Source of the DNA: Macrostomum lignano
Lineage: Eukaryota
Length of the DNA stretch: 30,380 bases
Assembly (NCBI GenBank): GCA_002269645.1
Contig: NIVC01000179.1
Location: 176,306-206,685, forward strand
Reading direction: 5' to 3'
The translations under genes and the position numbers were made by a program. The notes under the pieces were generated by a model. That model made no database searches, was not told the origin of the DNA, and was given only the letters and a program-made list of their open reading frames with translations. The stretch's first letter is position 1. Each line of letters begins with the position of its first letter. Shown one piece after another: positions 729-30,163 of the stretch.

Positions 729-3700
729 GTAAGTCTGCCAATACGAGTTAAGTCTGTTTTGAGGGCTATGAGTTTGTTAGCTGCGATAGATTCCGCGCAA
801 GTTATTAAATGAGTTTGCCTTTTTCACGGGTTGCATTAATCTTCCTCTGTTTCCAAAGAGAGTTTTACAGTTCTCGTGTCGTATCTCATTCCAATTTTAA
901 TTCAAATCCTTATATTTATAACAAAAAGCTGCTTTTTCTTTTTACTTAGAAAAATCGTAAACCTAGGTATCAAAACTTTTATAGGCCACCCAGGTGATCA
1001 GCTGTCCGAGCTGTCGTTCGTCCGCACCGGCCTGGGCTCCCGGTATCCGGCCACCGTCGCCAGAGCTAACCGGGTGTACCCGTACAATGGGCTCACCGGT
1101 GATGTGTACTCTCTTCCACTCGAGTTCCCCGGTGACGAGGCCTTCAACTTTGCCCTATACCTGCACGGGCACGGGTACCTTGACTTGTACCTACCCTGCG
1201 TCTACACGGTCACTGGCTTGATTATTCAAGGCTCATCTGTGCACTATCCGTACTACGGTCGCTTCCTAACGTATAGAATACTCTACGCATACGAAAAGCG
1301 GCGAGACATGCTGACGTACTACAGGGACTTGGAGAACAATGGCGCTGTGAGCAAACTACCAGATATAGATGTTTTATTTGGAATTTTTGCTACTGAGCCA
1401 ATGCTTTCTGGCCAGTGTTAAACATTTAAAGTCGATTAATAATTGAGAATCATTCAAATAAACTATCCGGCTTGGTATTAGACTTAAACTCTTGTAAATG
1501 TCGGAGGATATTTTATCGTCAATATGTATTGTTATGGCAAGCTTAAAAATTACCTAATAATAACCCTATATTCAGGTGAGCTTTAGCGGGCCTCGAGATG
1601 AGAAGGAACGCCGTAGAGAAGTTTTCACCAACCCGTTCCAAGCTCAAATTGTGCGAGTGAATGCTCTGTCCTCTAGTGGCCGCTATGCAATAAAGCTTGA
1701 TTTACTTGGCTTTCCGAACGACACGAGTAAGTAAACTCTAATTTCCCCTAAAACATTGAATATTAGTATAAGAGCATACTAACAACTATAATCTACTACA
1801 GACAGCACCCAGATTCCGGAGGAGCATATGAACAAGACGATGGTGGATGGCTCAACGCTGCAGGTGACATTGAAGTACTTCTACCACCTGAACTTCATGC
1901 AGTTCAATAGAAAGTCAGCCGGTCTTCTCCGGTTCTATTTGAGCTTTGAGGAGCTGGCTGGAGAAGATGAGGTCTTCAAGGTGTACAACACAACGTGGAT
2001 GGTACGACTATCGTCTTTTAACTTTTTGATATCTTTTACATTGGCCCTAGTTATTTACCTGGATACTGTTAACTTGATTGCAGTTCAATGTCCAGTCTGC
2101 AAACCAAAGTCTGTACTTTCCACAAGTGCTGCAGCCGCTCAAGCTGACATTCCACATTGTCAATGGCAGCCTGTCTCCTGATGAGCTGAGTCTGCTCGGG
2201 AAGATGACCAACGACTGCCCGGATGGATTTACCCCGCATTTTGACGTTTGCTTGCGAACCATTACAGTGGTGGCAACTCAAGAAGTGGCGCAGAAACACT
2301 GCCAAAGCTATCGGTGGGCTGGGCAGAGGGGAACATTATTCATGCCGAAGGACGCCATGAAGATGAACTTCATTATAGGAAAATAGTGAGTTTTCAGTTT
2401 GCTAAACTTGTTTTGCTTAAAAAATTAACGTATTGTGGGGAATTTATGATAAAAAATGCATTGATACCTGGTAAATTCAGCTATGACTGGGAAGTGCATG
2501 TGGGCATCAGAAGAAACTCGAGCACCGGCAGCTGGGAATGGTTTGATGGAGAGCCAGTCAGCGATGGATCCTGGGCTGCCGAGAGGGCAGGGAATTTGTA
2601 TGCCGTGTGGCGTCCCTGGTTTAATGGATTGATTCCTAGCGGAAGCAGCACTGCCCGACTCTACTTTGTTTGCCAAATTCCTATTGTTATAAGTGAGTTT
2701 CAGCGCATTTTAAAGTTACTTTTTAATATTGCTTTCGACTACGTTCGCTGTTCACATTCTTGTTTTTAATCCTTTAGGACCGAATTCGTGTACTAAAGGG
2801 CCCATGGTTTACTACATGCATCCGTCAATGTGCTCAGGCTGCAATGACGATTTCGCTAAGTGGACCGATACTGACATCAATATTCGAGTAGCACACAATG
2901 ATGTCATGTTTATTGACGAATACTTCATGAACCGGACGACTAACTTTAGGGCTAATACGCAAGATTTTTGGATTTTTTCATCGAATCCTCTTTCTTCTCC
3001 TCCTCAAATAAATTCCAATAATGTTTTGCAGCACTTTCCTTGTGTTGAGTCTTGTAAGTGATTTTAATTGCAATCGAAATTTATGTCTGCCATTTCGCTT
3101 TGTACTGTTTAACTTATTCCTTTTATTATAGCTTGTCTGCAGCCTCTGCTTCCTGGGATTCCTGGAAAGTTAAGAGCAACTCTAAGCGGATCTGGTCGAT
3201 CGTCTTTTAATAAGCCAGAGGATGCGATTATGGGAAATCCTGTCCGCACACGAGGTAATCCTTCATGAATTATTTGTACCAGTGCTTTTGACAGCTTGCT
3301 TACGTTATACATGTAGTCTCAGCACTCAAAAACAGCAACAAATGCTAATCGCATTTATAGTTCCGTGTGTAAACAGCAGAGGAGATCATACCTACTTTCT
3401 GCACGAGCTGAATGTCACCAGAGAGGGTATCGCTTGCGCACCTTGGACGTCTGGAGTTCCGGACCGAATGAACTATAGCTCGTATTGCATAAGCAGTAAG
3501 TTAAATCGCATCTAATGCATAGGCTTGGCTGTAGCGCTTTCAGCAAACGGATATCCTCATTCACAAGAAGCTATGCATGCATTTCAGGTGCCACATCCGA
3601 GCAGCCTTCGTGCAACAAAGTCACGGGAGGGAAGGGAACCTGCCTTGCCACAAGCTGCTGTAAGCGTCACGAACTAGAACTCACTTTAAATTAATACAGA

Positions 3701-6700
3701 GGCTTTTAGGACTATTTGTTTGTTACAGAATAAAAGAACCAAAATTTAGGTGACGCTATTATTAAATGGGCGTTTAAGATTTTGTTCATAGGAGTTGCTG
3801 TGAGTTACTAGACGGTAAACGCGTCCGACTCAATCCCGCCACGACGCCTGGTTAGATTCGGGCCTGTGAGATTTTCCCGCAGAGTTTCCTGCAGAAGAAG
3901 CAGTGGGTTTCTCCTGCGGCGAAGTTTTCGCGCATGATGTTTTCCACCAAGATTCTCCTGACAGTTTTTCCTGCCAAGGTTTTTCTGTCGAGATTTGGCA
4001 ATCTGCACATCCGGGGTTTTAAAATCTAGGACCTACAAGCATTAGGGCTCAGGACCTAGAAACTATTAAAAAATCTGTAAGCATTACTGCTACAGCTTTT
4101 AGTAAAATTTTATACACGTGCACACGCTCCATGTATCCACATATATGTATTAACACATGTCATTTATTCATAAAATTCTCACATTCATATGTAGAATTGT
4201 ACAGTACGGAGTCTAAATCAACTGACGCGATGGTGATTTTCCCGCCTCCTCCCTGAGAAGCAAAGATGATAATTTTACCAAATTTTACCAGCAGCTTTAG
4301 CTTTTCTAGTACATATTTCCAAATACATTTCCTAACTGGTCCAAGATTTGCGCTGGGTATGGGATGATTTCACCGAAGGCGCTGCGCCAGGGTGCCCAAA
4401 ACCCACCAGCAAAATTTATTTTATTGTAAACTATATTGCTCTTATTGCGTAGTTCAAATCTTCGTCGATAGTGCTTTGGTTTTTCAAATTTAAAGAAATC
4501 TGGCAAATTATCAAAACTTAGGCTTCCTCCTTTTTACTAAACAATGTGATATCAGAATTTCAGTGAAATAGGCAGTCTTATATTATACAAATGTTTTATG
4601 GGGCGTTATCTTCAAACAAAAACCTGGAATTCTTGTTCCAGTTCACTACTACCACCCGAATATTGCGGGGCTGCAGGGCCACAATGCTGCTATCCACAAA
4701 AAAGTTTGGTTCAACAACAGAGAAGTGTCCGACACCGCCACATCTGGCGGTTTTCTCAACATTTACACCAACAATCAGGCATCGTATGTGGATGCTACTG
4801 AATACTATTATGTTCTGGTGGACCTGAAGTTGCTGCATACAATTTCGGGTGTCGACTTCCAGAGCCGTAAGAGGCATATTTCCAATTTTAGAAATATTCC
4901 GATTTTGCTCATCTGCAGTGCGAAGGCTTTTAAGTCTATGGATTTTTAATATGATAATTTCTTGAATGATGTTGCAGTTAAAAGTATTGTAATTTAAACT
5001 ACCTGTAGTTTGAAAATTGAGTCTATTGATAAACTTAAACTATGGTAGTTCATATATATGTTACTATATCTATATAATTAGCTCATATCTGACTACATCA
5101 TAATTTTCATGAATAATATATTGATGCAAGTGACCAGTGAAAGAATAATACTTGAAGTTTATTTTTTAAATTTTCAATGCCCAAGCAATTCGTTGGCCAA
5201 AACTAGTAGTGCATATACGAGCTATATAATTAATGCACTAACAACGATAACAAACAAAATACCCCCAGGATCTAGAGTAGCGATGACAATGTCGGCCGAT
5301 AGAATCCGGGCCGACGTTATTTACCTCAATATATTTAAGTAGATGCCATAAATTGTAAAACAAAAATAAGACATCAGTTTTCAGCTTTTTTCAGCATACA
5401 AAGCACATCTGCAGATCGCTGGTGAAACCTCATGCTTATATAATATGAATAATTACGGAATAGGTCACCGACTCGAGAGTTGCATACCAATAATTTGTAT
5501 AGACATGCTGAAATCAGTCTATATCCCTGCATCCGAGACAGCAGTCAGATGGCTAAAAAACGCACCCATTGCTTTTTAACTCCACCCGTTTCCTCACAGC
5601 AACCAGTGGCCAGTACCCGATCCACGTGCGCGTCAGCAGCAGCTATGACTCATCTCTGGGAGAGCGCGCCTTTATCAACTGGCCTCTGTGCGACTCGCTG
5701 GAGCTATCTGTCAGCAGTCTCACCGAGTACAGCTTCACCTGCTCCAGCGTCATGCTTGGTCGATATCTCGTTCTCACCAAGTCCGCTGATTTGGGATTCT
5801 TTCGGGTTGATCAAATCTTTGTGTTCGCAGAGGAGTGTAAGTTTTTGTCTTTTCATTGGTCCATTTTGTTTAAATTACGATTTTTTTTAGTAGTAACATG
5901 CCCAGCAATGTTAATCCCCAGACTATGACTACGACTCGCAAGTGGACATGCGAGTCACATGGATGCCGGATGAGACGATCTCGAAGGCTCTGCAGACTAA
6001 CAATGTCACATTCAATTTGCTCATTCGCAACAGACTGGCAAAGATCTGGTTCACCGATCAGTATGGCTACTTGGAGGCCATGACCAATGTAGGAAACCAG
6101 TTCTTAATGTCCAATTTTCATGCCAGTAAAGCACCCATTTCCTAAAACCAATCAATACTCATGCATTCCAGCCTCGCTACGTGCTGATGCTGCAAGGAGA
6201 CGGAGCGAGCCTGATCAAATATGTCGGAGGGCAAATCGAGAACAAAGACTACTCTGTAAACAGTCCGGCCGCATATGTGCTCGAAATGCTGAACAGCTCA
6301 CTCAACCGGACAGCAACTCATAATACACAGGACTTTGCCAAGGTCTGCGTTACCTGGACAGCCGACAACAATGCAACTACGTTTTTCACCTACGTAGATG
6401 GCCAGCTGATTGGTCAGTCAACGGACTTCCGTCACGCCATCCCGATCAGAAAAATAGGCTACTCAAACGACGTATACAGCACTGGCACAAGCATACAGAT
6501 GTACTTCGATGTGAGGAGCACAAAGACTATGTCAACATATCGGCCACAGTACTATTTCCACCAAGAACGAGTTTATCTTCAGGTAGCCTAACTTTTTTTT
6601 CTCATTTTATTTTCGGAATATGCGCACTCGAGCCCAACTGAATAAAAAAAATCCACTCGTATTTTTTCTAGGCAACGTTTGACAAGTTCGTCAGCCTGCA

Positions 6701-9700
6701 ATGGATCACACTGCAAGGGGGGCCGGGTATCAATGTTCTCTCTAACTCATGGACAACCGTGCTGAGCTACTATATGTACTATAGCGAGAATGCCCGCTAT
6801 TGGAGGTCACTCTACAACAAATTTGTAAGCAATCTCACAGATACATTATAAATGATAAATTTATGTTCACAGATAAATTATTTTAAGCAACTAAAATTAA
6901 ATTTTTTGTGTCGATAATTCCCTAAAATATATAAGAGCTACGATTTACAAGAAAACTAATTTCCCCATATTGCAGCTGTTCATTGGTCCACGTCAGACGC
7001 GTCAGGCGGCAAGTGTGAAGCTCCTGCCTGACCTGCGTACACTTGCTCTCAGAGTTTTCCCCTACCAATATCAAACACGGAACGAGTTGAAGTTGCAGCT
7101 GTATGGTTGTCCTTATGGTAAGTAAACCATTTAATCACATATAATTTCTGTTATGACAATTTTAGCTAATAAAAGTTCTGATTTTCAGATACAAAAGACG
7201 CCTCTCTGCCGTATATCGTGTCGAACTACAAGTATAGGTACTACAGCTCATTCAGCTATGCTGAGCGAGGCAACGATGGTAGAGCCTACATGTTCCAAGG
7301 GTATAATCAGCACTACATGACCTACTATCAGGACTACGCTGATCCGTATCACTACTGGTTGATCTCCTTTGGCCACCTCACAATTGTTAAACGGATTCGA
7401 GTTGTGGATTTGATCGAAGAGCTTGGTGAGCATAAAGCCTGTGCCTTATTTTGTACCTTTTTTACCCAATAAAGTAAGCTCACGCGTCACAAGCCCTCTG
7501 TAGTTTACAATATATGCCGGAATCCTGCTGTAACACCTATCCTTCTATTTATACCATTAATTACTTACCATCATTTTGAATATATGCTAAGGCTTAACTC
7601 AATTTAAACTCGTACATTACGATGTGAAGTCTACCTCCTGAGTTTTACGCCCGCACTATAAAAAAACTCGGGTTGAATTACGTCTCCAAACGTGAAAGCA
7701 ATGAGAGGTGCCGATCGAAAAGCATCGGACTAATTTCAGATGCGTACGGAGGGGACGTCTGTGGCCCTTCGTCTAGCCGCACGGGATACTTTGGACGACT
7801 GAATGTCACATCATCAGGTTATACTTGCCAGGATTGGGAGAGCAACACTCCACATGTTCCCAATACTGACTGCCAAAATGCTGGGTATTTTCCTGTGAAC
7901 AATAAAACTGCCTCCAAGAACTACTGTCGCAATTGTGACAACACAAACCGCTTCTGGTGTTATACCACCAATCCTAGTGTGAGATGGCAATCCTGCCAGA
8001 TTTATTCCTGCAGTCGAGCAAACATGCGATTCGGTGAGCTCAAACCACACAATTATATTAAATTCTATTTAAAAATACAGCTCTGAAGTTTTTTAATTTT
8101 CCAGACTATGAGGAGCTAGCTTTCGCGGAGCTTTTTGTATCAAACTCTTCCTCAGTCACGCACTCCAGCGTGCAGGTGCTTGAAAACCTGGGCGACAACT
8201 ACCTGAGAGAACACATTTGGGCTGTGGAAGCTAATAAGGTAAATTTTCTTGGTTTCCAGATTTTTATTGCTTGTGCTTCAAAAATTTAATTCTATCCATT
8301 GTTGTTTTAGGCAGCGCGCTATGCCGGAATACGAAAGCTGGCTGATTACAGACGGCGACTCAGCTTTGCAGAGTACGAGGTCTATGGATACCCTGCAATC
8401 AGTAAGCTCTCGTTTTTTTCTAACTCAAGTTAAAGTGAAATAATGCAATCGTACGAACTTTCAAATAAAATACTAAAACTACTCAAACCTTTCAGATCAG
8501 CTGCATTTGCTTGGCAATCCCATCGGAATGGAGGACGGCATTATTGAGTTGAACCAGCTGGACCCGCAAGCAACTCCGCTGCCGTCAAACGCGGATCCAA
8601 GTCAGTACCCGTCACCGTACATGTTTCGGCTCAACACCCCAAAGAAGCCTCGGCAGCCTCCTGGCATGTTCTACTACTCCGGTGAGTGGCAGAAGTGCTT
8701 CCTGTGTTGATAATTTCAGATATCGAATATGCTCATGAAACAGTGATGAAATCTTGACTATTGCATGGCTGAATCTCACAAGAGAAGCTGACAACTGTTT
8801 CAGAATACCCAATAAACATCTATCTGACTGTGAGTCACACCATCCTTGGATTCGTGATCCAAGGCTCATCAATGATGGACAGAACGAATTACTGGCGAGC
8901 CTATGTGAGGAGCTTCAAGATATTCTACGGCGATGACCCGAGAACTCTGGTTCCAGTGAGGTCTTATCAGACGAGCAACAGCTACGTTGATGTAAGATGC
9001 CTTTCTGATCGAAACCAATGCTTTCTTCTCCGCTCGCGACTAAGGCATAAAAATGCAGCGCTTTTTTACCATTGCAGCACCAGTTCAACCAGTACTACAA
9101 CGACATGATGCAGCTTCGAATGGATGTCCCAGTGCCATTCAAAGCAAAAATAATTCAGTTCCGTCCTGTGAGTTATTACAACAGGCGAGTGGCGAAACTG
9201 GAAATCCTGGGCTATCCGGATGGTGAGAAATTGCATGTATTACTCCCATTCAATCCCATTTGACTCAATAAGTCGAAGTGTGTTGATCCAATGGTTTCTG
9301 ATTAAAATTATGCAGCTTGTTTTTCTTCCCGCAGATTGTGGTCTAATTTCTGGTGACCAGGCAACGCTGTCGAGCCCAACGTCAAACACAAGGAACTTTA
9401 TATTCAAGGACTTTTACCATTTCTCAGGCTTCTCGTTGAACACAAGCGGTGACCCAGTGAAGTTCCTGTTGCAGTACAGGCACATGCGTACCTGGCAGCT
9501 TGTGAACTTTACGGTTCTCGGGGAAACAACGGTTCGTAATCTGTTGCATTATCAGCGTCTTTTCCAACTGGCTGCTCACAAATACTCGAATTCGATTAAA
9601 AGTATTTACTCTGATGGTGAGCTTGCAACTCACTCGCCCACTACAGGTATTTGCCTCATCAAACGGATGCGACCAAGCCCTGCCGCACCTGATCCGAACA

Positions 9701-12700
9701 AATGAGATTCGTATTGTCATTCTGAACGGTTCCGCATCGACAATGTCCGTTCTGTTCCGAGGCTGCATGATCAAAGAGGGTACGAGCTCGTAGGCACGGC
9801 ATGACACTGTTTTTTTTCAGGGCAGTTTTTTAAAGTATCGTTTATCGGCGTATTTAATATGATTACAAGTAGTATGCTGACAATAAAGTAAAAGTACAAG
9901 TTGCATCTTCTTTATAATATCCAGAATGCCCGTTCGGCTTCTTCCGGCACAAGGACAGCTGCTTCTGGGTTCCCTACGGCATGAACAGCTCATTCCCTCA
10001 CACGGTCGCGCCGCCAATGCTGGCCAAAGAGATTTGCGAGTCAATGCACTGGAACGGCAGCGCACATTTGGCCAGTCCGAAGACCGTGCTGGAAAACCAG
10101 CTCTTCTACTACATGTTCTATAACTCCATCACCAGGTACGAGAGTATTTATGCCTAGTATCTTTGAGCATATTGAAATATATATAAACATACGAAGATAA
10201 AAAGACAGCAAAATGTATCGCTCGCTGCTTAAATCTTAGTGGTCAAAATCTGCACAAGTTTGTCCACATCGATGGCCAGTACAATCGATCATCCGGTCAG
10301 TGGAAGTGGTGGGATGGAAGTCCAGTTGACTGGAAGTTCTGGCGCCACAGCAGTCCAGGCAAGGAGTGCCTCATGATGGACTTGGAACACGGCGGAACGT
10401 GGCGCAATATCAAATGCGACACCTATCAGTCGGTCTACCAGTTCATCTGTGAGGTGAATGCACTCAACACAGGATACTCGATGGTTTCGGAGCCGATCAA
10501 CATCACTGGAAATCCGGTCAACTACTACAATCTCCGATCAGGATACAGCGCTTCTGCCGCCAATGATGGGGACTTTACTCTGAATGTTGTGTCAAAGATT
10601 TACTCGTCAACTCCGGTCACATCAGCATCAAGATTCGACTGGTGGCGTGTCGACATGCGGACTGTTCAGTATGTCAGCGAGGTGTGGATTTACCTGCGCA
10701 GCGACGTAAACGGTATGTTTGATAATAAACCAAAAAGTGTACAGCATGTTATTAATACGAATATTTTAAGCACTGCTAATAAAAATGTTCCTTTGGCTGA
10801 AACTTGATGACGGAATAGTGTATTTTGCATGTTCACGATGCTGCTTGCAAATTGATTTTATCATCGAATCCATTGTAACTCCTTTAGAGAATGCTCGACT
10901 GTATGAAGCCTGGATCTCACAAACGACGGCTGACAATCCATACACAACATCAATGTTTTACTCAATACTGTGTCAGAAGAGAACCGAAACATTCAATCCC
11001 GGGGATGTAATTGAAATGATGTGCGGATTCTCTGGACGATATGTGATTCTCAGACGGGAGAGAATTGGCTGCTGCTTCTCGTTGGCCGAAGTCGTGGTGT
11101 ACACAAGGAGATGTAGGTTAACACACTTAATTACCCTCGCGAAACTTTCATCAGGACAATGAAATAAGCATTCTAACCTATCTTCTACAGATGTGCAGCA
11201 GGAAAGACAGGCAAAGAAGGTGTACGTAAAGCGCATGATGTACTACGACAACAACTACTACATGGCGTCATACAGCGGACTCAGTCACTTGCGTCAGCTT
11301 TTTGACTGTTTCCGTGAGCTGGCACCCACATGCAAGTCCGTTTTTACCGGAGGTTCCGTAGTTTCCAAGTTCAGCGATGAAAATGCGACTCACACGAGCG
11401 ATGGAATGATCAATCGATATGGAACCAATTACAACATGCTTCAGTGGTTGCCTTACAGTACGTACGCATTTAGTTGATGGAATCAAAACCTGCTCAATTA
11501 AGTACGCAATTATTTGTCAATTTAAATAATGTATTTTAGACACTTCGTGCGATCTTCGGCTGGTGAACGGTGTGCCAGGACTGTTGACGACGAATGTCAC
11601 ATCAAAGTCTGAAACGTTCCGCTACACAGCAAAGAGCGTATCGTACAAGGTCCAATCTTGGGGTGAGTACAACATACTCGAGTTAAATCTACAGATTGTC
11701 ACAAAACTAGTAAAAAATATGCAAACAATGACCCACAGACCCCGAGTCCCAAACAGTTCAGCTTGATCGGTACCGTGTTGGCTTCTGGCCGCTGGTACAA
11801 GAAACTCAAGCAAATGACATTCAACAGGGCATGCGACATGGCGACCTCGGCTCCAATGTGAGCTGGGCCAGCGGACCGACCTTCAAGACAAACGGTGCCC
11901 TGTATTTGCTTGGTAATGCAAACAGCACTTTGCAAGTTCCGGCAAGCGGGGCGTTGGAAATGGATGGCAATGAGTACACAGTGTGCTTCTACAGCTACTT
12001 CAACCAAAGCTATGACTTCACAATGCCGGTTCTGCAATCGTCTGGAGACAGTCTACAGTTCCGATACACCGACATCAACAACTTTGAGACTCGAGTCATT
12101 CGGCAATCCGGAGCTGCCACGGTGGTCACAGGAACTCTAAAAGCTCCCTACTTCTGGCACTATTTCTGTGTGGCGGTGACTCGATCGCCTGCACAAGTGG
12201 TCGTGATCGAAGGTCACCGAACAGTTTTTTCATCCTCGGTCACAAGTGATGACCCGGTTCGATCACTTGCTAGGTATATGATACTGCGGCTGTATTATAG
12301 GTATTGTTTTATTACACAAGTTATCAAGTCACATTATTGAAGTTTTGCTATTTCAGCGAGTCGCTAGTGTTTGGAAATGGAAGCCATGGATTTTTGTTCT
12401 GCCTGCAAGTGTTTTCTTTGTCATTGGATGTCCACCAAAGCCACTGGGCGCACAGGGAGTGTGCACCATACACCAAGTGTAAGTGTTTTTTTCTCGGTAT
12501 GAGTCTCTGTTAAAGAATGGTGTATGGTATAGTAGAGCTAATGTACCGTCTTGCGAAGGCATGAAATTGGTTTAATTCAGCTGCCATTAGGACTTAAGAA
12601 TGTACTCCATGATTGACATTTTGTGTTGGTCCGGAAATTTTATAATTCCTTATACTTTGCTCCAGTGTGAATAGTTGCTCAGTTGCAAAGATTAAGTCCG

Positions 12701-15700
12701 AAAGTCTATCCAGTAGTGAATAAGGGCGGCCAAAGGGCCATGGCCCCATCTTCCAGTTGCAAGACATTGCCTTTACTTTTTGCCTTGAAACTACGAGTAC
12801 TTTATTTTGCTCTACGAATATACAAACAATGGGGCTTTAGATGGCAAAAGCTTTGCCTTTTCAAAACACTATTTTCCAAAAAGGCTCTGCCTTTTCTGTA
12901 TCCGCCTCAGGTTCAGGCTGTTTATCAGGATTTTTCTGTCATCTACAATTATTGTACTTCCATGTTGCAGCGTTAATTGCGCGGGACAACTTTTTACGTG
13001 GAATTTTTCTTTAATATTTCACTACTGGAATATTGAAGCAAATCTATTTAGGCCAAATTCTTGAAATAAAAAAATAATGTGATTGTACTTACTCTACTTC
13101 GTTCGTTGTGCTATAAATTATCAATATCACGCTGTGCTAAATGTTTTTCTTAACTTTTTTACTACGGCAACCAAATATCTGGCACAAAATGTTGAGGCTA
13201 GCTGCCAATAAAGCCAATATTGTGGTGTAGCCCGTAAACTCAATATTATAAGCATGACGCATACAACCCGCGCATACAACTCAGACTGCCGCTCCATGCC
13301 GAGTCGCTGCCCCGGCTACTTTGACCGAAGGCTGAACATTTTTCCTGGCCGAACGAGCACATCCTACAGTGAATACATTCGTTATACTACATGGTCGAGT
13401 GAAGAAACCGTGTTAAACTACTTCACAACCAACACTGGCTGCTTTGCTTTGGTCAATGGAGACAGTCACATGCGCTGTTTTCGAGATTGGCAGTTCAATG
13501 AGTTCAATACGGCGTACTACAGATATGACCAAAGAACCGACGCCCTGATGTGGATCTGCTGCGACTCCACCTTCTCAAACACAACTGCTTCCGGCCAATA
13601 CTGTATGGTGGACAATATTCAAGCTCTGTCATTTGCTGGCAAGTACTGGACAATTCAAGAAAACGGAGGAGTGTGTCCGAAGTGGACTCAGCGGATCGGC
13701 TCTCTGTTTCACGAGGATTTAGTTGAAGGCAGCCTTTACGATGCAGAGAACTATTGCAGAATGCCGACCTCAAACTATAAAAACGATTGCCCAAACAGCG
13801 GAACTGGATACAGCCAATGCAACTACTACTTCTGCGATGAGAGTGAGTACTATAAGTTGCTTGTAATGCAAAAGAATGAGCTTTATTGCTTTAAGTGTGC
13901 ATTTTAAAACTAATAATTACACCCCTCGATCAAAAGTCTGCAATACTGAACATAAATTGTACGAGTCGTATAACTGTGAGAAATATCTCACACTGAGATG
14001 AATATTTACTTCCAGACGATCCGAGACCGACCCTGGGCTCGTGGAGAGCGGGTTCAGCCGATCTGGACGAATGGCTGCAGTTGTCGTTTTCGAGGCGAGT
14101 GAGAGCTGAGAGCATCACAATTGGCTCAACTCACTGCTACCACAGCAGTGCTGTGCATGAGCTCATTCAGCGCTATGTGCTTGAGTACTCGGATGACAGT
14201 CTGTACTGGTACAGATATACAATGCCCATGTACCACTATCGGGTGAGCTGGATTTACTGGTAGAAATCTCTGTTGTTACTTTATTACATTTATTATATGG
14301 GTCCAGCTGCGCCTTTCAAAAAGGATTCGATAATGAAAAAATTACGCAGTATTTTCTATCTATAAAAAAGTTTTTCAATGGAATTTTCTTCGTGGGGTTC
14401 GTGGAAATCTGGGGGGATGCTTGCTGTCTAAGGTTACTTGCTATAGGGGGATGCTTACTATCGGGGGATGCTTGCTAACGGGGGATGCTTGCTATCGGGG
14501 GATGCTTGCTAACGGGGGATGCTTGCTATCGGGGGATGCTTGCTATCTGGAGGGGGGTGCTTTCTATCTGGAGGGTGCTTGCTATCTGATGCGCTTGCTA
14601 TTTGGGTGGGGGTATGTGTTAGCACTGTGATGAACTTTTATTTATTAGAGAATGTACTTTGCTTAGTAGCCGTCAACGGCTGAGAATTCTATTGATGTCT
14701 ATGGACATTTGTACAGTTCAATTCGGTGGCTTAAAGAGTTGCCAAAATATAATTGAAAAGACCAAGCGTCTGCAGAGTTAAGCTAAAGGCTGAGACTCGA
14801 TCAATTTTCTTACTCGTCCCAAAAAACGAACACTGGCGACGACGGCTGGTCTTATCGAGCCTCTGGAGACAGAAGCCCCAGCGGAAATTGAGCGCTGGTT
14901 CCAACGCTTCGAAGCTGTTTCCAAGCTGAACAAGTGGGATGACACCGCTCAGAAGTTCGCCCTCATCGCACACCTCGGCAAGAAGGCCTTCGCACTGTTG
15001 GCGGATGCGCTATTGCCAGATAAGCCTGACGCCAAGACCTACGCTGATCTGAAAACTCAGCTGATCAAGGAGACGAAAGCGGCGAAATCCGAGATTGCAT
15101 ACCGGTACGCGTTCCATCACCTCAAGCAGGACGACGGCGAAGACGTTTCTGCCTACGCAAGAAGGCTGCGACTGGGTTCGGAGAACTGCGGCTTTTCAAC
15201 CGCCGAACTGAATGACCGCCTGCGGGACCAATTTATCTTCGGATTGTCGAACAAGGAGATCGTCAGAAAGTTGCTCACGGAGAAACTGAAAGATCTGACG
15301 TGGGAAAAAGTAACTACGGTGGCCAATGCATGCGAGGCCGTAAGTCGCGGCGAGAGACAAATCTCAGGAGGCGAAATTCTACATGTCAAGTCAGATCCTC
15401 CTTCGACATCGAAAGCCCAGAAGCCAGCGTACCAGAAAAGCGACCAAAAGAACGGCCAATTGCGCCAAGTCAAGTGCTTCTGCTGCGGCAAGGAAGGACA
15501 TACAAAGGACCAGTGCCACCACCGGACTAAGACATGCCTTCAGTGTGGTAAGGTTGGTCATCTCAAAGCAGTTTGCAGGTGCGGACCTAACAAAGGTGGA
15601 CAACGGCCTTCAACGAGCAACAAATGGTCACAAGGAGGCGGATGGCATCCAAGGAGCAGAGTCAGAGCAATCGACGATGCAGCTGATCAAGTCGGGCACA

Positions 15701-18700
15701 TTTTCTCGACGATGACGCCGGAAGATGGTCGTGGAAGCAGAAGGATAACGCGACATGTAGTAGTCAATGGTACGAAAATCAAGGTGCTACTGGACACCGG
15801 GTCGTGCTCAACGTTCGTGTCAAGCTCGGTGTTTCAAAGCCTACTCGAACCAGCAAATGTAAGGCCCACAAGCAGACGATTCGCTGCGTATCAAGGGGAT
15901 CCAGTGCTAGTGAAAGGCGAAGCTATTGTGAACGCCAAGCTAAACTCAGTAAGTTCCGACCTAACTCTGTTTGTGGTGGACAACCCAAAAGCCGAATCTA
16001 TCTATGGCCTAGATTGGATTGCTGCCCTTGAGCCAGACCTCTACATTTTTATTACAAAATGTACGGTGCCTGAGGAAGACGGCTCGAATCCTACAACGGC
16101 GTGCTCTGTAAAAAGATTTTCTGTATCATTGGCCATTGAGGCGAGAGCAAAGCCCATCTTTTTTAAACCTCGGCAAATTCCATACGGGATTCAGGACGAT
16201 GTCAAGGCCGAGTTGAAGAGAATGGAAGAGGCTGGACAGCTCCAGAAGGTGGAATCCAGCGAGTGGGCTACACCCATTGTCTGTGTTCGAAAGCAGTCTG
16301 GAAAGGTTCGGATTTGTGGTGACTACAAGGTTACCCTCAACCCACTGCTGAAAGACATGGTGTCAACAACGCCCACAATTGACGAAGTTCTGTCAAAACT
16401 AGGCCGTGCCCGCCGATTCTCTACGTTGGACCTATCAAATGCGTACCTCCAAGTACCGGTGGATGAAGACAGCAGCGTGATGCTGACGTGGAGCACTCCG
16501 TTCGGCTTATACAGGCCCACTGCATTGGCATATGGAGTAAAGCAAGCACCAGCAATTTTTCAGTCATTCATGGACAGGTTGCTTCTAAACATAGAAGGTG
16601 TCATTTCCTACCAAGATGACATTCTTGTGTGGGGTTTCAACCAACAGAGTCATGACAACAGACTGTCCAATGTGCTTCGAATTTTAAAGGAGAGTGGACT
16701 GAGCATTAACGAGGAGAAATGCACTTTTAACAAGCCATCTATCATGTTCCTGGGATATGAGATCAGTGAAAACGGCATTCGTCCACCACCAAAGAAAGCC
16801 AAGGAGATTGCAGGATTAGAAGAGCCAAAGAATCTCAAGCAGCTGCAGTCATTTATCGGGATGGTCGATTTCTACGGACGGTGTATCAAGAATCTCGCGA
16901 GCCTGAAAGAACCTCTAACGAAACTGACCAGGTCAGGAACGAAGTGGGCATGGGGCCCAATCGAGCAGAGAGCCTTTCAGAGCATCAAGGACGAACTACA
17001 CAATGCAGTCGCTCTCAAGCCTTTTGATCCATCAGATAAGATCGTTCTCACTACTGACGCGTCACCATCGGGACTTGGTGCAGTCCTCGAGCAGTCGTCT
17101 GGGCCCGTAATATTCATTTCAAAGACTCTAACTCAAGCAGAGCGCAACTATGCTCAAATTGAACGCGAGGCCCTCGCCATTGTATGGGCTATGAAGCGCT
17201 TACACAAGTATTTGCTGGGACACAAGTTCGTCATTCACACAGACCACCAACCGTTAAAGTTCATCTTTGATCCTGGCAGATCCTTGTCAACTGTTGCTGC
17301 AGCGAGAGTGCAACGCTAGGCAATCACTTTGATGAGCTACGAATACGCCATTGAGTGCAAGAGATCTGCTGAGATTCCCGTGGCCGATGCCCTGTCAAGA
17401 CTGCAGAACAGCACGTCTGAAGGGGAGCAGTTTGACATTAGCTCAGTGCAGGACTGCCTACTAGATTTTCCAATCAACAAGGAGCGTTTGAGAAGACAAT
17501 CGAAAGAGGATTCAGAGCTCCGGAAGTTATTCGCTCTAGTCAAGTTTGGCTGGAATGCAGAAGGACTTCGAGAACTACAACAGTTTAGCCGATTCAGGGA
17601 CGAGTTAGTCATTGAGACTGTTGTACAGAGGTATTCGGCTGGTTGTACCAAAGCAGGAGCGTTCTGCAACTTTGCGATTGCTGCACGAAGGACACATCGG
17701 ACCAGAAAAGATGAAATCCATAGCTAGACAATGCGTCTGGTGGCCTGAAGTAGATCGAGACATCGAAAAGTATGCGAAAGGATGTAGTTCGTGCCAGGAA
17801 AACAAGGATCATGGGGCCACCCGACAATGGACTTCGTGGCCGGATGAGACCGAATGCTGGTCAAGAGTTCACATGGACTACGCAGGGCCTATGAAGGGAG
17901 GAAACTACATGTTGGTACTGATTGATGCGTTCAGTAAATGGGCTGAAGTTCACGTGACTAAGGGAACCACTTCATCTGAGACAATCAAGCGACTGCGAAG
18001 AACGTTCGCCCAAGAAGGCGTGCCCGTGACTATTGTTTCCGACAATGGACCTCAATTTGTATCGAAAGAAATGCAAGGTTGGTTAAAAGGAATCAACTGC
18101 CGACATGTTCTCACACCACCGTATCATCCAAGGTCAAATGGACTGGCCGAGCGCTTTGTGAGAGATTTAAAAAATCACGTCCGAGCCGCTGAAGAAGACG
18201 ACCTTCAGAGTTGCGTCGACCGGTTTCTGCTTCAATACCGGAACGCGAAACATTCTACGACCGGAAAATCGCCCTCTGAGCTGATGAGAGGTCACCTACT
18301 TCGCACCCCTGCATTTTCTCTGGCACGTGAGCCAGTCTGGGTGAAAACCTACAACAACGAGATGACAAAGTGGAAGTCTGGCGAAGTGGTGGCAACAGAG
18401 GGAAAGGTTGTGGTCGACGTTGAGCTGGAGGACGGAAGGCGTGGACGCTACCATCGTGAACAGACAAAGCCAAGGAGTTCCGGTTCCGATGACCTGGTGG
18501 AGACGGAGACTGAAGAACATGTGCACACGGATCAAGAGTCTGGTCTTCGGAGAAGTAATCGCCATCGGCAAGTACCAAGGCGACTTGAGTACCGCAAGCT
18601 TGGTGTACCTACCTAGCTGTTAACTAATGGGAAGGAGTGATAGCACTGTGATGAACTTTTATTTATTAGAGAATGTACTTTGCTTAGTAGCCGTCAACGG

Positions 18701-21700
18701 CTGAGAATTCTATTGATGTCTATGGACATTTGTACAGTTCAATTCGGTGGCTTAAAGAGTTGCCAAAATATAATTGAAAAGACCAAGCGTCTGCAGAGTT
18801 AAGCTAAAGGCTGAGACTCGATCAATTTTCTTACTCGTCCCAAAAAACGAACAGTATGCTTGTTTTCTATTTAGGAGAATGCCTCTATATCTGTGAAGGC
18901 TTTATTTTATTGTGTCCTTTTTGTTAATTCCGAAAAAAAGAGACTCATAGCAGACATCTTTGTTCACGACAATTTTACTCAAGAAAGGTTGTTTATAAAA
19001 CTGAAGAAATACTTAGTTATTTAAGAAAATTTGCCTTTTTAATGGATTTGCATAAATAATTTTTGCTCCTTGCTTATTGAAAGGCGGCACTAGATTGCTA
19101 GTCTTTGTTCTTAAATACTACGAGCGTATATTGCTAGATATTACTTAGATAGATATTAGATATTAGGTATTAGATATTAGATATTAGATTTCAGATATTA
19201 GATGTCAGATATTAGATATTAGATATTAGATATTACGAGCTAGATATTAGATATTGCTATATTGCTTATAGCGATCTTATATTGCTAGACTGCGTTCTTA
19301 TATACAGCATCCGCGTTTTTGTATGTACTCAAGAGTCTGCGGAATCAAATCCTCCTAAAAGAATTATTATTGTTATTAGCCTGCAGTATCTGCGCAAATG
19401 CGTAAAAATAAGCTGTTAGTGTTCAACCTCAACATAGAGTTACCGATCGCTAAAATGCGAATTAAAATAATTTAGTTGACGCGAAATCACTCAGATTCTG
19501 TACTTGTACAATGAACTTGTACTCGATTTCTCACCAGACGCTGTTCGGTCCCTACAACTCGCCGGACACCTGTGGCTCATCAACCGAGCGCCTCATTCCG
19601 TCAGTGGAGGCTGCATTCCTGCGAATTTACTCCCTGGCCAACACAGGTCGCACAGCAGGAAAGCTGGAAGTTTTTGGCTGCGTCGTGGAGCCCTACGCCC
19701 TCATACTGCCAGAAATCTACTATCATCCTTACCAAGTGTCCACCACCAAGATCGGAAACAGATTCAATGCTGACCACGTGGTCACTTCGATCAATCTAAA
19801 TTGGGGCACTGATGTCAGCTACGACGGAGTCTACTATCGACCCGGATTTCGAATTCATTCAAAAGTGTCCTATCTTATAGTGACCTTCGAGATTCCACAG
19901 CGAGTGTTTGCTGTGGTGACTGCAGGAGGCAGCTCTCATTACGTCGTTTCATACGAGCTGTTCTATGGCGAAACAGACGAAGCTCCAATGCAGGCCGTCA
20001 ACAGCTCTCAAACGGGAAATACCACATTTCTCGGAAACCAGGAGGACAAACAGTGGATTCGACAAGATCTTCAGGCTCCCGTTGTTGCAAAGTACATGGT
20101 GTTCAAGCCACAGCAAGTCAACTCGCTATGCATATTCAGACTGGGTTTCCTCGGATTTCCAGAAGGTAAGGCTTATTACGCAGAGAAAGTTCATCATCTC
20201 ATGTGACTTGCAATTACTGAATTATTGTTTCAGAGTGCCCTGTCATAAACCATGCGAGAATGACGGAGAGTGGCGTCACTCTAACAAGTCAAGCCAAAGT
20301 AACAAGCGGACCGAAATCCGAGTATCGCTTCGTTCTCGACAATGTTCACCACTTGTCGAACGTGAGCCTCTCTCCGACGGGTTGCTCAGCAAACCAAACT
20401 TTGCAGTTTGAGTTCCTCGACTTCAACAACAGCGTTGTTGCGTCCTACGTACGTTTTCTCTCTGTTTGTCATGTTCACAAAAAGTAGCAACCTAAATATA
20501 CACGAGACTTTACTGAAGTACTGAATAAATTTTAGAATAAGACGGTTTTGGCCACCAACTCGGACATTTGGCTGAATCGCACAGTCACGGCAGCACAGAT
20601 TGTTGTTAAGAAAGTTAACGGAGACTTCTGTTCAGCAGTTGGTCTTAGCTTTTACGGTCGTGAAGCTGATGGTAAGTTCAGCAAAGAAATTTTGAGTGGC
20701 GTACGACATAGATTCGCAGTTTCTGTTTAGTTTGCAGATCGAGAGCTCATTTTTACATTCGTTCTAATGCAGAATGTCCTCGGAACTTTTACTACTACAA
20801 CGGGCGCTGCGTGCACTACTACACGGACTACGAGGCCTCCGTGCACAGAGAAATCGCACGCCAATATTGTGCGAACATGACCTGGGCCAGCACAGGGCAC
20901 CTCTTTGTGCCAAGGAGCTTCTATGACAACACGGTGATTAGAATCGGTTACGCTGATCTCATGCAGTAAGTGCGCATATATATGTATGTAAAAAAATATT
21001 GCACGAATTAATACCATTCTGTCGTCCCCGAAACTAAAATTTAAAATCAGTCATGTTTCATGTTATTGTGCATGCCGTTTTGTTTTCGTAATTTTGTAAT
21101 CCATATATTCTAATGATATTCATCTAGCTAGCGTGCTAGGAAGAAAACGCATTTATGTGTAAACGGGCATGTAATAAGAACCGCTTTAGATATCTTTCTA
21201 ATGGTAATAATAATAGTAACAGTCAGTAGAATGAGTAGAAAATGTCAATAGAACTTTTTAACGGAATCATACTTGAAAATGAAACTTCAAGGTCCCGTGG
21301 TTCAGGAAGCAGTTTTGCTGCCAACAGCTACCGAGTTCACATCGGTGTAATCAGAAACGCCAGTGGAGTTTGGGTGCTTGGGCACACTAACCAGCCTCCC
21401 GTGTGGAAGAACTGGCGCTACGACGAACCTGCTGCAGCAGACACTTGCGCGTACTCAACCCTGTTAACCGAAAACTGGAAATCGAGCACTTCATGCACGA
21501 GCTCTTTCGTTGTGTGCGAGGTTGAGGCTGGTGAGACTCGGATGTTCCTTTAATTGCTTAATGCCTGGTATCCATGCGCTAGTAGCGTTTAATATCGAAA
21601 TGCAATTAATGCATTCCAGCCAAGAAAGCGAGTCGTCAATGCGACAACATGCTGTACAATGTGTACTTCGATTCGAAGACCACAGTACTGAGTCAGGCCG

Positions 21701-24700
21701 GATTGGACAAAGTCTCTCAGCCGTGGAGACGCGTTGCGGAGACTATCAAGTATTGCCAGAACAACAAAGACATTTGTGGAACAATGGAGATGATTACAAC
21801 TACAGAACAAGTAACAACGATCTCTCGCATGAACTCTCTCAGCGTGGGATTTGAGACAACTTCTCTGTCTGGAAGTTTCGTGATTGAGCAAATCTGTCGA
21901 GGTAAGTTGATACTGGCTAGAAGACGAAATTTGAAGTTGTTTTTTACTGATAAGATTAAATATATTTTTGAGTGCATAAACTCGACTTGCAGAGTCTTGC
22001 TGGACAAACTTTTTCGACACGAATAGCACGATTCCGATGAGCTTCGCTACCGGCCACATTTGGGCCGGGTCTGCTGCAGGAATTCCTCTTGCCGTCGTGC
22101 CTGATGCGACGACTGGCTTCTGGAGTGGCGACTGGGTCACGGTGCGTTTCGGCCAGCATTCTCTTTTAAGTTAGATTTTTTTACATAGAGCGTGTTGTAG
22201 CTTTCATGGGAATATAAAGCTTTTTAATTCTATAATACCGGATTCTATATAATCCGGATTCTATATAATAAGGTAGAAAAGCATAGACTAGCTTAAAAAA
22301 ATTTCGTATTGTTTTGGAGTTACGCTCGTATTTGTTGATACAGACCGTTTAATATGGTCTGTATCAACAAAATTCAAAGCTTTTCAATTAAAAAAGCATG
22401 CGGGAGCATCAGGTCGGTTCCGATCTCTTAAATATTGCTAGAATCCGGACTCGCTTGCTCCATATCAACATGTGCCAAGCAGTTCAGTAATTCCCATTCG
22501 CACTTTGTAAACTTCCCATAGCCTAAATGTATATTATAGCATGTATAGTGTAGCAACCATGTACTCGTACATCTATTTGCATGGTGAGCAACTAGCATGC
22601 GTGAGAATTGCATTCTGTGCGCGCGTAGGCTTAGTAAGAGGTATTTAGGATAAGAGCAATGTACATGCGACCCCAAAGCTCTGAAGTCAATGGCCTGAAG
22701 CATCGCTTTCCTCCTCAAGCGGATTAAAAATCATTGGCAAAGAAACGAGAAATATAAACGGAAGTAAAACAGTGCTTTAAAGAAACTTTATTTAAATTTC
22801 AGATATCATTCAACCAGACATTCCTATTTACTGCTGTGGCAGCCAGCGGTTCTGGCATCGAAGGTTCCGGTGACCGAGACTACTCAGGCTTCGTTCTTGA
22901 GTATTCAGATCTCACTCAGGCTGGAGCTCCTATGGTGACTGGCTCCTTCTCGTCTAGTGGGTCAGCGGTAAGATTCAAGCTGGAGCAAAATGTACATTGA
23001 CTGAATACTTCTGGGTCGAATTTTAATGAAATTTCGCTGTTTCCATTATAGGCTACTCTAACCGTTCAAAACGGCTACTTGTCTTGTCCGTTTAATCACA
23101 TCATTCGAAAGCCATTCTACACCAACAAGCTGAAGGTTATAACGAGTCCGGCTGGAAATTCAAAGGCCATGAAGTTCGACGTCTTTGGATGTCCAGTGAA
23201 TGGTAAAGTCTAATTTAAAATACAGCATTTCAGATGCATTAAAGATCAGAATGTCACTCGGTACTTAGCTCGTATTTACGCACATTTACCGTCACAATCA
23301 ATCTACCCGTCACAATTTTAGTTGATTCGCTTAGCTGCATAAACAGATCCGAGATCCACGTGCCGCACTCCCTGTACGGAAACATGCCGGCTCAGTGCCA
23401 AGACAACTGGATTGTGATCTACAAGAACTTCAATGCGAGCTGGAGCATGAACCGCAGTTACGAAGATTATCGACGCGGATTTTTCGACATGGAGAGTCTG
23501 CTAAATTCCAGCAGCTTCTGGATCGGAAACGAAGCCATGCGCACCCTCTCCATCTTCAACAAGTACCGACTGCGGATCGACATGTGGGACAAGAATGGCA
23601 AGTTCCAGTATGTGGAGTGCGACCGATTCTGGGTGGATTCGGTGTACGAAGGATACAAGGCCCACTTTGAGAGCTGTTTCTCTGCGTTCTCGGATTCTGT
23701 GCGACTGTCAAGTCACGACATCGCCCAGTTCTCTACTTTTGACAACGGGCCGCAGAAAAGCTGCGCCATCTCTGGAGGCAGTGGTTGGTGGTACAAATCA
23801 TCGGGTTGCTATGACAACAAGATGACTGGAAGCGGATTGTCCACATCACCCGATAAGATCTCATGGTCGCCTTCATTCGAGGGCGGAAAAGTGCTGATGC
23901 GGATCATTCAACCCAGCTATACCTATCCAGGTAAGTTTCTGTGTTGCATTTAATCATATATTTGAACAACAGCAGGTAATTTGTCACTCCTATAATGTAC
24001 ACGCTACTCCTTTAAAATCTTGCAGCACGAAATTTGAGCGAGGACTGTACTAGCGACCTCAACTGTCAAATTGTCAATCGATCTGTGTGTCTTGCACCAG
24101 ATACGATGTACCGAACTCGATGTAACTGCACTGTCGGTTGGTACCTTAATCAAGGAATGTGCAAGCCAGGTAAGCATTCAATAGTTTAATAGTTCTTGGC
24201 GCGCTGTGATAAACATACTCGTACTAACTAAAGTTGTAACTCTGCAAAACTTTTCAGTTGTCGACCTTGAAGCCATCGTATCATCGATTGTGTCTGGCTT
24301 GAGCGGCTCTTTTGTGCGCTCATTTAGGAAGAATTTCACTCAAGCTCTGACACTAAAAGTTCGAAATGGAACAGCCAATATTACTGCGGTAACTCCACCA
24401 AGCATCAACTACAACTTCAGTGTTTTTCTGTGGTCGGAAATGACTTCTTTGTACCCAGATCCATTGGCCGACCACTTCAAAGCAACCTATATGCAGGTTC
24501 TCGATGGAGATCAGGCTTCCTACGGTGCCATTGGACTGAATCTCACCTTCCAGGTATTCGGAAGCGTTCTTCTCGCTACTGGAAGCAGATGCAAAGCCAG
24601 CTCATATTTATGTATAGCCGTTATCAACTCCGACGACTCTTACTACCGGGATCTCAACTACACAAACAATGGTGGATGTTCGTCCATCACATCAGTGCGA

Positions 24701-29942: not shown

Positions 29943-30163
<221 letters not shown>

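Follow-up and report, generated by a model that had tools for sequence, protein, structure and literature searches.

A discoidin domain divided by LamG-like and kringle-like exon blocks in a polycystin-1/REJ-like receptor gene of Macrostomum lignano and its possible folding as a nested domain

1. Introduction

The plus strand of the DNA stretch from Macrostomum lignano analysed here (contig NIVC01000179.1 of assembly GCA_002269645.1, positions 176,306 to 206,685; 30,380 nucleotides, hereafter the window) holds a single long gene of mosaic make-up, which, as judged from its predicted domains, codes for a polycystin-1/REJ-like (PKD/REJ-type) receptor with a rich lectin-type ectodomain. Within this gene, the coding sequence of one discoidin domain was found to be interrupted by exon blocks that encode a LamG-like module and a kringle-like one, and on the evidence of the exons this genomic split is taken to be real. 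On balance, it is favoured that the two separated parts fold together around the insert, which would make the domain a nested (discontinuous) discoidin. A natural domain-within-domain arrangement brought about by exon shuffling is the likely interpretation.

In the proposed arrangement, a CASPR-type discoidin would consist of a first exon, E1, which contributes the first 41 codons, and of a body encoded by the exons E4 and E5a, with two symmetric phase-1 blocks between them and all exons spliced constitutively in genomic order. The strand contributed by E1 would complete the beta-barrel beside the C-terminal strand, and the usual N-to-C disulfide, here between the Cys of E1 and the Cys of the terminal ..FGC, would tie the halves together. 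The insert of about 420 residues would protrude from the variable loop that follows the first strand and precedes the conserved Trp. The arrangement would have originated by exon shuffling, phase 1-1 modules having entered an intron of phase 1.

2. Exon Organization of the Split Discoidin

The exons of the region are listed below with their window positions; a slash marks an exon border.

10888-11112, plus strand: upstream exon, phase 1-1, acceptor cctttag/AG, donor GAT/gtaggt, peptide ..GRYVILRRERIGCCFSLAEVVVYTRR
11540-11662, plus strand: E1, 123 nucleotides, phase 1-1, borders ttttag/ACACTT and CTTGGG/gtgagt, peptide TSCDLRLVNGVPGLLTTNVTSKSETFRYTAKSVSYKVQSW
11739-12273, plus strand: E2a, first LamG-like exon, enters in phase 1 and exits in phase 2
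12357-12478, plus strand: E2b, second LamG-like exon (..SLVFGNGSHGFLFCLQVFSLSLD..), exits in phase 1
13231-13842, plus strand: E3, 612 nucleotides, phase 1-1
13231-13598, plus strand: E3a, Cys-rich stretch of about 123 residues with 6 Cys
13599-13842, plus strand: E3b, kringle-like module with six Cys, exits in phase 1
14016-14242, plus strand: E4, discoidin body part 1 (DDPRPTLGSWRAGSADLDEWLQLSF..YHYR), profile positions 45-105, phase 1 to 0
19538-19681, plus strand: E5a, second part of the discoidin body (profile positions 119-158), with the C-terminal Cys in its ending ..GKLEVFGC
19682-20165, plus strand: E5b, a second, unsplit discoidin in the same exon as E5a, used as internal comparison

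Every exon border in the region is canonical (AG/GT). An FTP/fucolectin-like domain has its second half in the exon 10888-11112, which terminates one base into a codon, fitting the phase of E1; since the preceding FTP-like domain is completed by this exon, E1 begins something new. For E1, the original prediction had claimed the same length and phases as for an exon at 3132-3254, and both could be read directly, with canonical borders. The blocks 11739-12478 and 13231-13842 had each been described as phase 1-1. For E3, with 612 nucleotides, this was confirmed. For the LamG-like block, the phases hold, with E2a and E2b giving 657 nucleotides of exon (219 codons, 4 Cys), but it is not one unbroken block, being split by an 83-nucleotide phase-2 intron (12274-12356). 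An alternative in-frame acceptor of E3 is present at 13285.

The direct join of 11662 to 14016 keeps the frame, as claimed, and reads ..SYKVQSWDDPRPTLGSWRAGSADLDEWLQLSF.., and the four splice combinations (full, both blocks skipped, LamG skipped, E3 skipped) are all open. The chance of an open frame, estimated as (61/64)^n, is about 2e-4 for 178 codons and 6e-5 for 204 codons. The completion of the discoidin had been placed at 19538-19690. The domain is indeed completed in the exon E5, which starts in phase 0, but the last Cys codon of the split discoidin ends at 19681 and the exon runs on to 20165. For the unsplit discoidin E5b in the same exon, the best stretch matching Pfam F5_F8_type_C covers residues 650-733 of the 749-residue model, and 46.7 bits were obtained with our own discoidin profile.

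The conceptual protein of the region matched just three proteins in a database of 5.8 billion. All three are UniProt gene models of M. lignano from another assembly (P0001, P0002, and P0003), are 91-95% identical, and are annotated as "C-type lectin domain-containing protein." These models were used for the paralog comparison; P0001 uses the E3 acceptor at 13285.

3. The Discoidin Body

The peptide encoded by E4 and E5a was identified as discoidin by several searches. With phmmer against the PDB, it matched the factor V/VIII C2, lactadherin, and CASPR2 discoidins with E-values from 3e-6 to 6e-4. With our own profile, which has 159 positions and is derived from 71 homologous domains, E4 alone scored 38.3 bits and E4 with E5a about 60 bits, and the match spanned positions 45-158 of 159 only, the first 44 or so being absent. 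A similar truncation was given by the Pfam profile F5/8 type C (PF00754), where nothing before position 24-25 of 127 is matched and the peptide obtained by joining E1 to the body reaches 22.0 bits at a cut-off of 28.2. An exhaustive search of this joined peptide against 1.84 billion representatives returned 50 discoidin proteins at E<=1e-3, and those of the 50 that were looked up, from cnidarians, a sponge, echinoderms, a tunicate, and a mollusc, were of the ordinary discoidin-repeat kind.

The body has the conserved Trp, the WLQ-type strand, and the R..E..GC C-terminus. In the alignment, W50 and G163 are invariant and R145, R158, and E160 nearly so. The end of E3 does not supply the missing N-terminal part, as the E3 tail together with the body scored 59.3 bits with our own profile. 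By these similarities, E4 with E5a is regarded as a genuine discoidin body that is devoid of its N-terminal quarter.

4. E1 as the Candidate N-Terminus

E1 carries a single N-terminal Cys and is proposed to provide the first strand of the split discoidin. When the N-terminal 24-mer of the human CASPR2 discoidin was slid over 22,647 stop-free six-frame sequence windows, E1 was found at rank 1 and its homologue at 3134 at rank 4. In Smith-Waterman comparisons with the CASPR2 N-terminus, E1 scored 37 (shuffles 18.3 ± 3.7, with 3 of 5000 reaching 37) and the exon 3132-3254 scored 38 (shuffles 20.1 ± 3.9, 5 of 5000), of which only the second result is independent of the choice of CASPR2, which was made once its phmmer alignment with E1 was known. 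In the direct comparison of the two exons, 15 of 5000 shuffles were as good. The joined peptide aligned with CASPR2 (PDB 5y4m) from end to end in phmmer, residues 3-165 to 6-153, with CDLRLVNGVP of E1 facing CDEPLVSGLP of CASPR2. With a matrix for the canonical motif C..PLG....I...QITASS, E1 reached rank 58 of 24,284. A search of the PDB with E1 alone returned a summed weak match to a long repeat protein, which was judged to be spurious.

The Cys residues and their spacing also suit a joined domain. Joining brings back the canonical Cys-to-Trp spacing: counted from the first Cys, the conserved Trp comes 47th, compared to 46th in the coral homologue P0004. Cys3 of E1 and Cys164 of the ..FGC terminus both stand at the aligned positions for the N-to-C pair. 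E1 contains one Cys and the body three, which makes four, while four are present in the LamG-like block and twelve in E3; an even number in every unit is reached only when E1 is assigned to the body. In the three paralog models, E1 (40/40) and E4 (75/75) are identical. Taken together, E1 is supported as the best candidate for the missing N-terminus of the discoidin, with a sequence similarity well above chance.

5. Structure Prediction and the Case against a Nested Fold

For the joined peptide, AlphaFold (AF2), run with homologous full-length domains aligned, produced a discoidin barrel with a mean predicted local distance difference test score (pLDDT) of 74, with 85-94 for the body, and a predicted template modelling score of 0.75. 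With Foldseek, the model was matched to factor V C2, lactadherin C2, factor VIII C2, and CASPR2 with E-values of 1e-8 to 1e-10 and template modelling (TM) scores of 0.70-0.79, the value for CASPR2 being 0.79. These alignments comprise about 150-170 columns and nearly the whole target.

The choice of CASPR2 mentioned above is one of several points that weigh against the nested reading. A gain in hidden Markov model (HMM) score on joining the halves had been named beforehand as a test, and it failed: the scores were 22.0 versus 21.8 bits with Pfam and 60.1 versus 60.2 bits with our own profile, and joining added 2.2 bits against CASPR2 only. The 500 controls with shuffled E1 reached 60.3 ± 0.9 bits with our own profile, and the real E1 did no better. 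E1 was not detected by an N-terminal sub-profile (rank 348 of 378), which gives 5.8 bits to a true paralog N-terminus; since this sub-profile is nearly blind even to the latter, the profile tests have little power. In comparisons of E1 and the 3132 exon with the N-termini of the unsplit discoidins D1, D4, and D6 of the window, no significant similarity was found. In the joined AF2 model, residues 17-21 of E1 (NVTSK) form the expected first strand with a pLDDT of about 60, and residues 26-46, which hold the exon junction, are below 50; this run is partly circular, as the N-terminal homology was imposed by the alignment. For the nested protein, AF2 was run with the 95%-identical segment of the paralog P0001 as first row and with homologues aligned to the body only. 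Here, E1 was an undocked coil with a pLDDT of 37-40, only the body was confident, and the model as a whole was poor, with a mean of 46; pairing is not refuted by this run. For the pairing of the halves, the predictions are supportive at best: a weak E1 strand is seen when the alignment imposes it, but not when E1 is left unaligned. The insertion junction between E1 and E4 matches no intron in homologues of two outgroups, the anemone Exaiptasia and the clam Solemya. Furthermore, the UniProt models are unreliable here: all three paralog models lack the exon 10888-11112, which is needed by the FTP-like domain, and two contain an additional, doubtful exon (VQQERQAKKVYVKRMMYYDNNYY.., about 11193-11315).

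These results would suit a different explanation, in which E4 with E5a is an N-terminally truncated remnant, E1 is an orphan short linker that happens to contain a Cys, and the split is a relic of rearrangement with no working nested fold. Besides the flat HMM scores and the undocked E1, which even under a favourable alignment reached a pLDDT of only about 60, it gains from two other bodies of the gene, D3 (6687-7113) and D7 (22797-23198), which also have no detectable N-terminal part directly upstream. However, no blocks are better conserved between the paralogs than E1 and E4, the Cys count and the Cys-to-Trp spacing are those of a whole domain, and E1 is far more like a discoidin N-terminus than chance would give. 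In addition, the strand that the body lacks is a core strand in the solved discoidins, because the Foldseek alignments cover the whole target. The truncated remnant is thus considered unlikely. The split discoidin of the original prediction is upheld by the body without an N-terminus, the CASPR2 likeness, and the Cys-to-Trp spacing, but not by the HMM and structure tests that had been named for it.

6. The Inserted LamG-Like and Kringle-Like Blocks

The block encoded by E2a and E2b had been called LamG. Residues 62-186 were matched to positions 4-123 of 151 in the Pfam profile Laminin_G_3 (PF13385) with 19 bits (E 1.6e-3), a weak match below the cut-off of 27.6. A sequence match in the PDB was not found for this block. 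In the AF2 model of the nested protein, the inserts have a pLDDT below 50, and the LamG-like region consists mostly of strands at about 35-50, a low confidence that is in part the fault of the P0001 segment, whose LamG is shorter by 16 residues. The block is accordingly termed LamG-like and not a LamG domain; a LamG-like fold, a ConA-like jelly-roll, is probable for it.

For E3, which had been described as an unassigned part followed by a kringle, no Pfam match was obtained even at E<=10, the kringle profile PF00051 included, and no sequence match in the PDB. The 81 residues of E3b contain six Cys with spacings of 24/27/11/10/5 and the motif ENYCRMP, in agreement with the NYCRNP-type motif and with the canonical kringle spacing. 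Compared to the true kringle of the same gene at 7628-8083, E3b reached a Smith-Waterman score of 46 versus 30.9 ± 6.1 for shuffles, of which 108 of 5000 reach 46 (p about 0.02), and the alignment pairs C2, W, NYCR, C4, C5, and C6. The kringle call is thus favoured by Cys spacing, the NYCR.P motif, and the same-gene comparison, but lacks a Pfam match. No relatives of the LamG-like block and E3 were found outside M. lignano in the database search.

Between the paralogs, the identity is 97.5% for the LamG-like block, 86% for E3a (94/109), and 91% for E3b, with E3 still open. E3a is the fastest-diverging block. E3 may either be under relaxed constraint or be evolving fast.

7. Recurrence of the Insertion and Possible Cassette Use

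A recurring insertion site in the discoidin loop had been proposed on the basis of two exons upstream of the split discoidin:

3132-3254, plus strand: second E1-type exon, 123 nucleotides, phase 1-1, tattatag/CTTGTC ... CACGAG/gtaatc, peptide CLQPLLPGIPGKLRATLSGSG..
3361-3495, plus strand: kringle-like phase-1 exon after 3132-3254, by sequence reading

By its sequence, the exon 3132-3254 is regarded as a true homologue of E1, and a kringle-like exon follows it. The kringle-like exons at 3361-3659 contain only three Cys in the best model. The body that would complete the domain is ambiguous, as of the two candidates D2 (4642-5180) is too long and D3 (about 6672-7113) is too short. The profile match of D3 begins near position 60; a LamG-like block immediately precedes this body, which has no adjacent N-terminal part. 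A recurring insertion site is therefore unproven.

The original prediction also regarded the two blocks as potential cassette exons, and its frame arithmetic is correct, with blocks of 657 and 612 nucleotides in phase 1-1 and all combinations free of stops. This opens an explanation in which a considerable fraction of the transcripts would lack E2, E3, or both, so that plain and decorated discoidins are produced. The skipped product would have the canonical domain length, and in P0002 and P0003 the donor of E2a is joined to an acceptor inside E3, which may reflect alternative splicing or an error of the gene prediction. In contrast, skipping of a whole block occurs in none of the three paralog models, all of which read from E1 through E2, E3, and E4 to E5; E2 is conserved to 97.5% and open in the paralogs; and symmetric phase 1-1 exons are the default for shuffled extracellular modules and carry no implication of skipping. 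Cassette use of E2 and E3 is unproven, and regulated skipping on this scale appears improbable. It is more doubtful still that the loop before the conserved Trp is a naturally permissive graft site that was used more than once in this gene and that regulated skipping switches between a bare discoidin and forms in which the ligand-binding face bears a LamG-like and/or a kringle-like module. If this were true, one PKD/REJ-type receptor would have several ligand specificities.

That E2 and E3 are dead or mis-modelled (decaying exons or an artefact of assembly or annotation) and that the real mRNA runs from E1 to E4 and E5 would fit the insert without detectable relatives outside M. lignano, the sub-threshold family matches, and the faster divergence of E3, but it is very improbable in view of open frames of 178, 40, and 204 codons with canonical borders, frames and order kept in three paralogous models from another assembly, even Cys counts, and a retained kringle-type Cys pattern.

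8. Insertion Site, Introns, and Origin

In the nested discoidin as preferred here, the E1/E4 junction lies at about profile position 44, after the first strand and ahead of the conserved Trp. The length of the loop at the junction differs among homologues, and one tunicate relative has about 20 extra residues. Judging from the structures of DDR2 with collagen and of factor VIII C2, the end of the barrel at which this loop before the conserved Trp is located is presumably the one that binds the ligand.

The intron between E4 and E5, at about profile position 105-111, is common to four other discoidin bodies of the window and is also present in the homologues of Exaiptasia and Solemya. As it is shared by cnidarian and mollusc homologues, this intron is old. 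The Exaiptasia homologue has one intron per domain, near position 108, and the Solemya homologue has introns near positions 58 and 108; the Solemya intron nearest to the E1/E4 junction lies about 15 residues downstream of it. The discoidin body at 19862-20161, within the exon E5, is intron-less.

Shuffled modules normally end up between domains. The gain of domains in the middle of a protein, flanked by symmetric introns, is a recognised minor route that accounts for <10% of events (PMC2926785). For the blocks E2 and E3, an insertion into a pre-existing intron is plausible.

9. The Retrotransposon and Repeats in the E4-E5 Intron

One further element lies between the two parts of the discoidin body, outside the protein:

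14617-18853, plus strand (gene strand): Ty3/gypsy-type retrotransposon with long terminal repeats (LTRs), target duplication, and domains

The LTRs are 216 nucleotides long with one mismatch and TG..CA ends, and the target duplication of 5 base pairs, GTATG, is present at 14612-14616 and 18854-18858. The 5' LTR is followed by a sequence like a tRNA primer site, TGGCGACGACGG, and ahead of the 3' LTR there is a purine tract. The frames for protease, reverse transcriptase, and ribonuclease H and for integrase are open, and the element is apparently intact. From these features, the insertion is judged to be very recent. The intron between E4 and E5 is 5295 nucleotides long because it holds this 4.2-kb element, and would otherwise be about 1.05 kb.

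Two tandem repeats were also observed in this intron. An array of a 17-nucleotide unit (GGGGGATGCTTGCTATC, about 10 copies, 80% matches) extends from 14412 to 14613, just upstream of the insertion point of the retrotransposon, and about 15 copies of (TAGATAT)n are found at 19135-19255.

10. Gene Context

Further domains of the gene in the window are the following.

7628-8083, plus strand: kringle, Pfam, 58 bits
10187-10804, plus strand: C-type lectin domain, by domain search
23243-23950, plus strand: fibrinogen C-terminal domain, 85 bits
24185-28411, plus strand: 4.2-kb exon that contains a PKD domain, 57.3 bits
28681-29232, plus strand: REJ domain, 93.6 bits

The assignment to the polycystin-1/REJ family is made from the REJ and PKD domains; GPS, PLAT, and the eleven-helix membrane part would fall past the 3' end of the window. 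With our own profile, discoidin bodies were identified at seven sites within 1173-23198. Fragment scans of other exons gave no matches. The modules of the gene are regarded, from their sequences, as old duplicates, and in a pairwise phmmer comparison of every block with all open frames of the window, no significant paralog pair was found.

FTP/fucolectin-like half-domains (..GRYV.I......L.L.EV.V..) recur at 5450-5900, 7180-7470, and 10400-11112, and the order of FTP-like domain, LamG-like block, and discoidin body is found in two places. From this repeated order, a larger unit of several modules may have been duplicated long ago. Close to the 3' end of the window, a (TACT)n simple repeat of 49 copies is located at 29969-30163.

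For annotation, the region holds a lesson, as domain callers see a truncated, sub-threshold discoidin and public paralog models skip or invent exons.

11. Comparison to Known Systems

The polycystin-1 and sea-urchin REJ family shares with this gene the REJ and PKD domains and the upstream C-type lectin and other lectin-like modules. Compared to this family, the gene unites an unusually rich set of modules (discoidin, FTP-like, LamG-like, kringle, and fibrinogen-like).

The discoidins of factor V/VIII C2, lactadherin, neuropilin b1, and DDR1/2 are the best sequence and fold matches to the body and share its conserved Trp, the WLQ-type strand, and R..E..GC. However, none of them has a folded domain in a loop, and the Pfam score of the discoidin described here is under the curated cut-off (22 versus 28.2 bits). 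The discoidin of CASPR2/CNTNAP2 is the only solved one that phmmer aligned from end to end with the joined peptide, and its N-terminus resembles E1. Discoidin, LamG, and fibrinogen-like domains are also found together in CASPR proteins, and each of these kinds is present in this gene. In contrast, the CASPR2 discoidin is contiguous and has LamG after it and not inside, the identity is about 24%, and the M. lignano gene runs on into PKD and REJ with no neurexin-like tail.

With phase 1-1 exon shuffling and nested domains in metazoan extracellular proteins, the region has in common that a host domain is in two parts with symmetric phase-1 blocks separating them. In the usual exon shuffling, the insertion is not inside a domain, whereas here it lies 41 codons into one and comprises two to three modules together. 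Nested domains through exon shuffling are already known, and the discoidin as a host is the new part; in a shallow literature search, no report of a discoidin as host of a nested domain was found. If the halves fold together, this would be a clear natural case in which exon shuffling puts whole folded modules inside another domain.

The discobody, a factor VIII C2 domain with grafted binding loops (PDB 4pt6), was among the fold matches and shows that the loops of a discoidin can be replaced by engineering without unfolding the barrel. A discoidin barrel loop that tolerates about 420 inserted residues would, if the nested fold is true, be useful to protein engineers who graft binding loops on a scaffold. 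The grafts of the discobody are short and laboratory-made, whereas the insert of the M. lignano discoidin would be natural and multi-domain.

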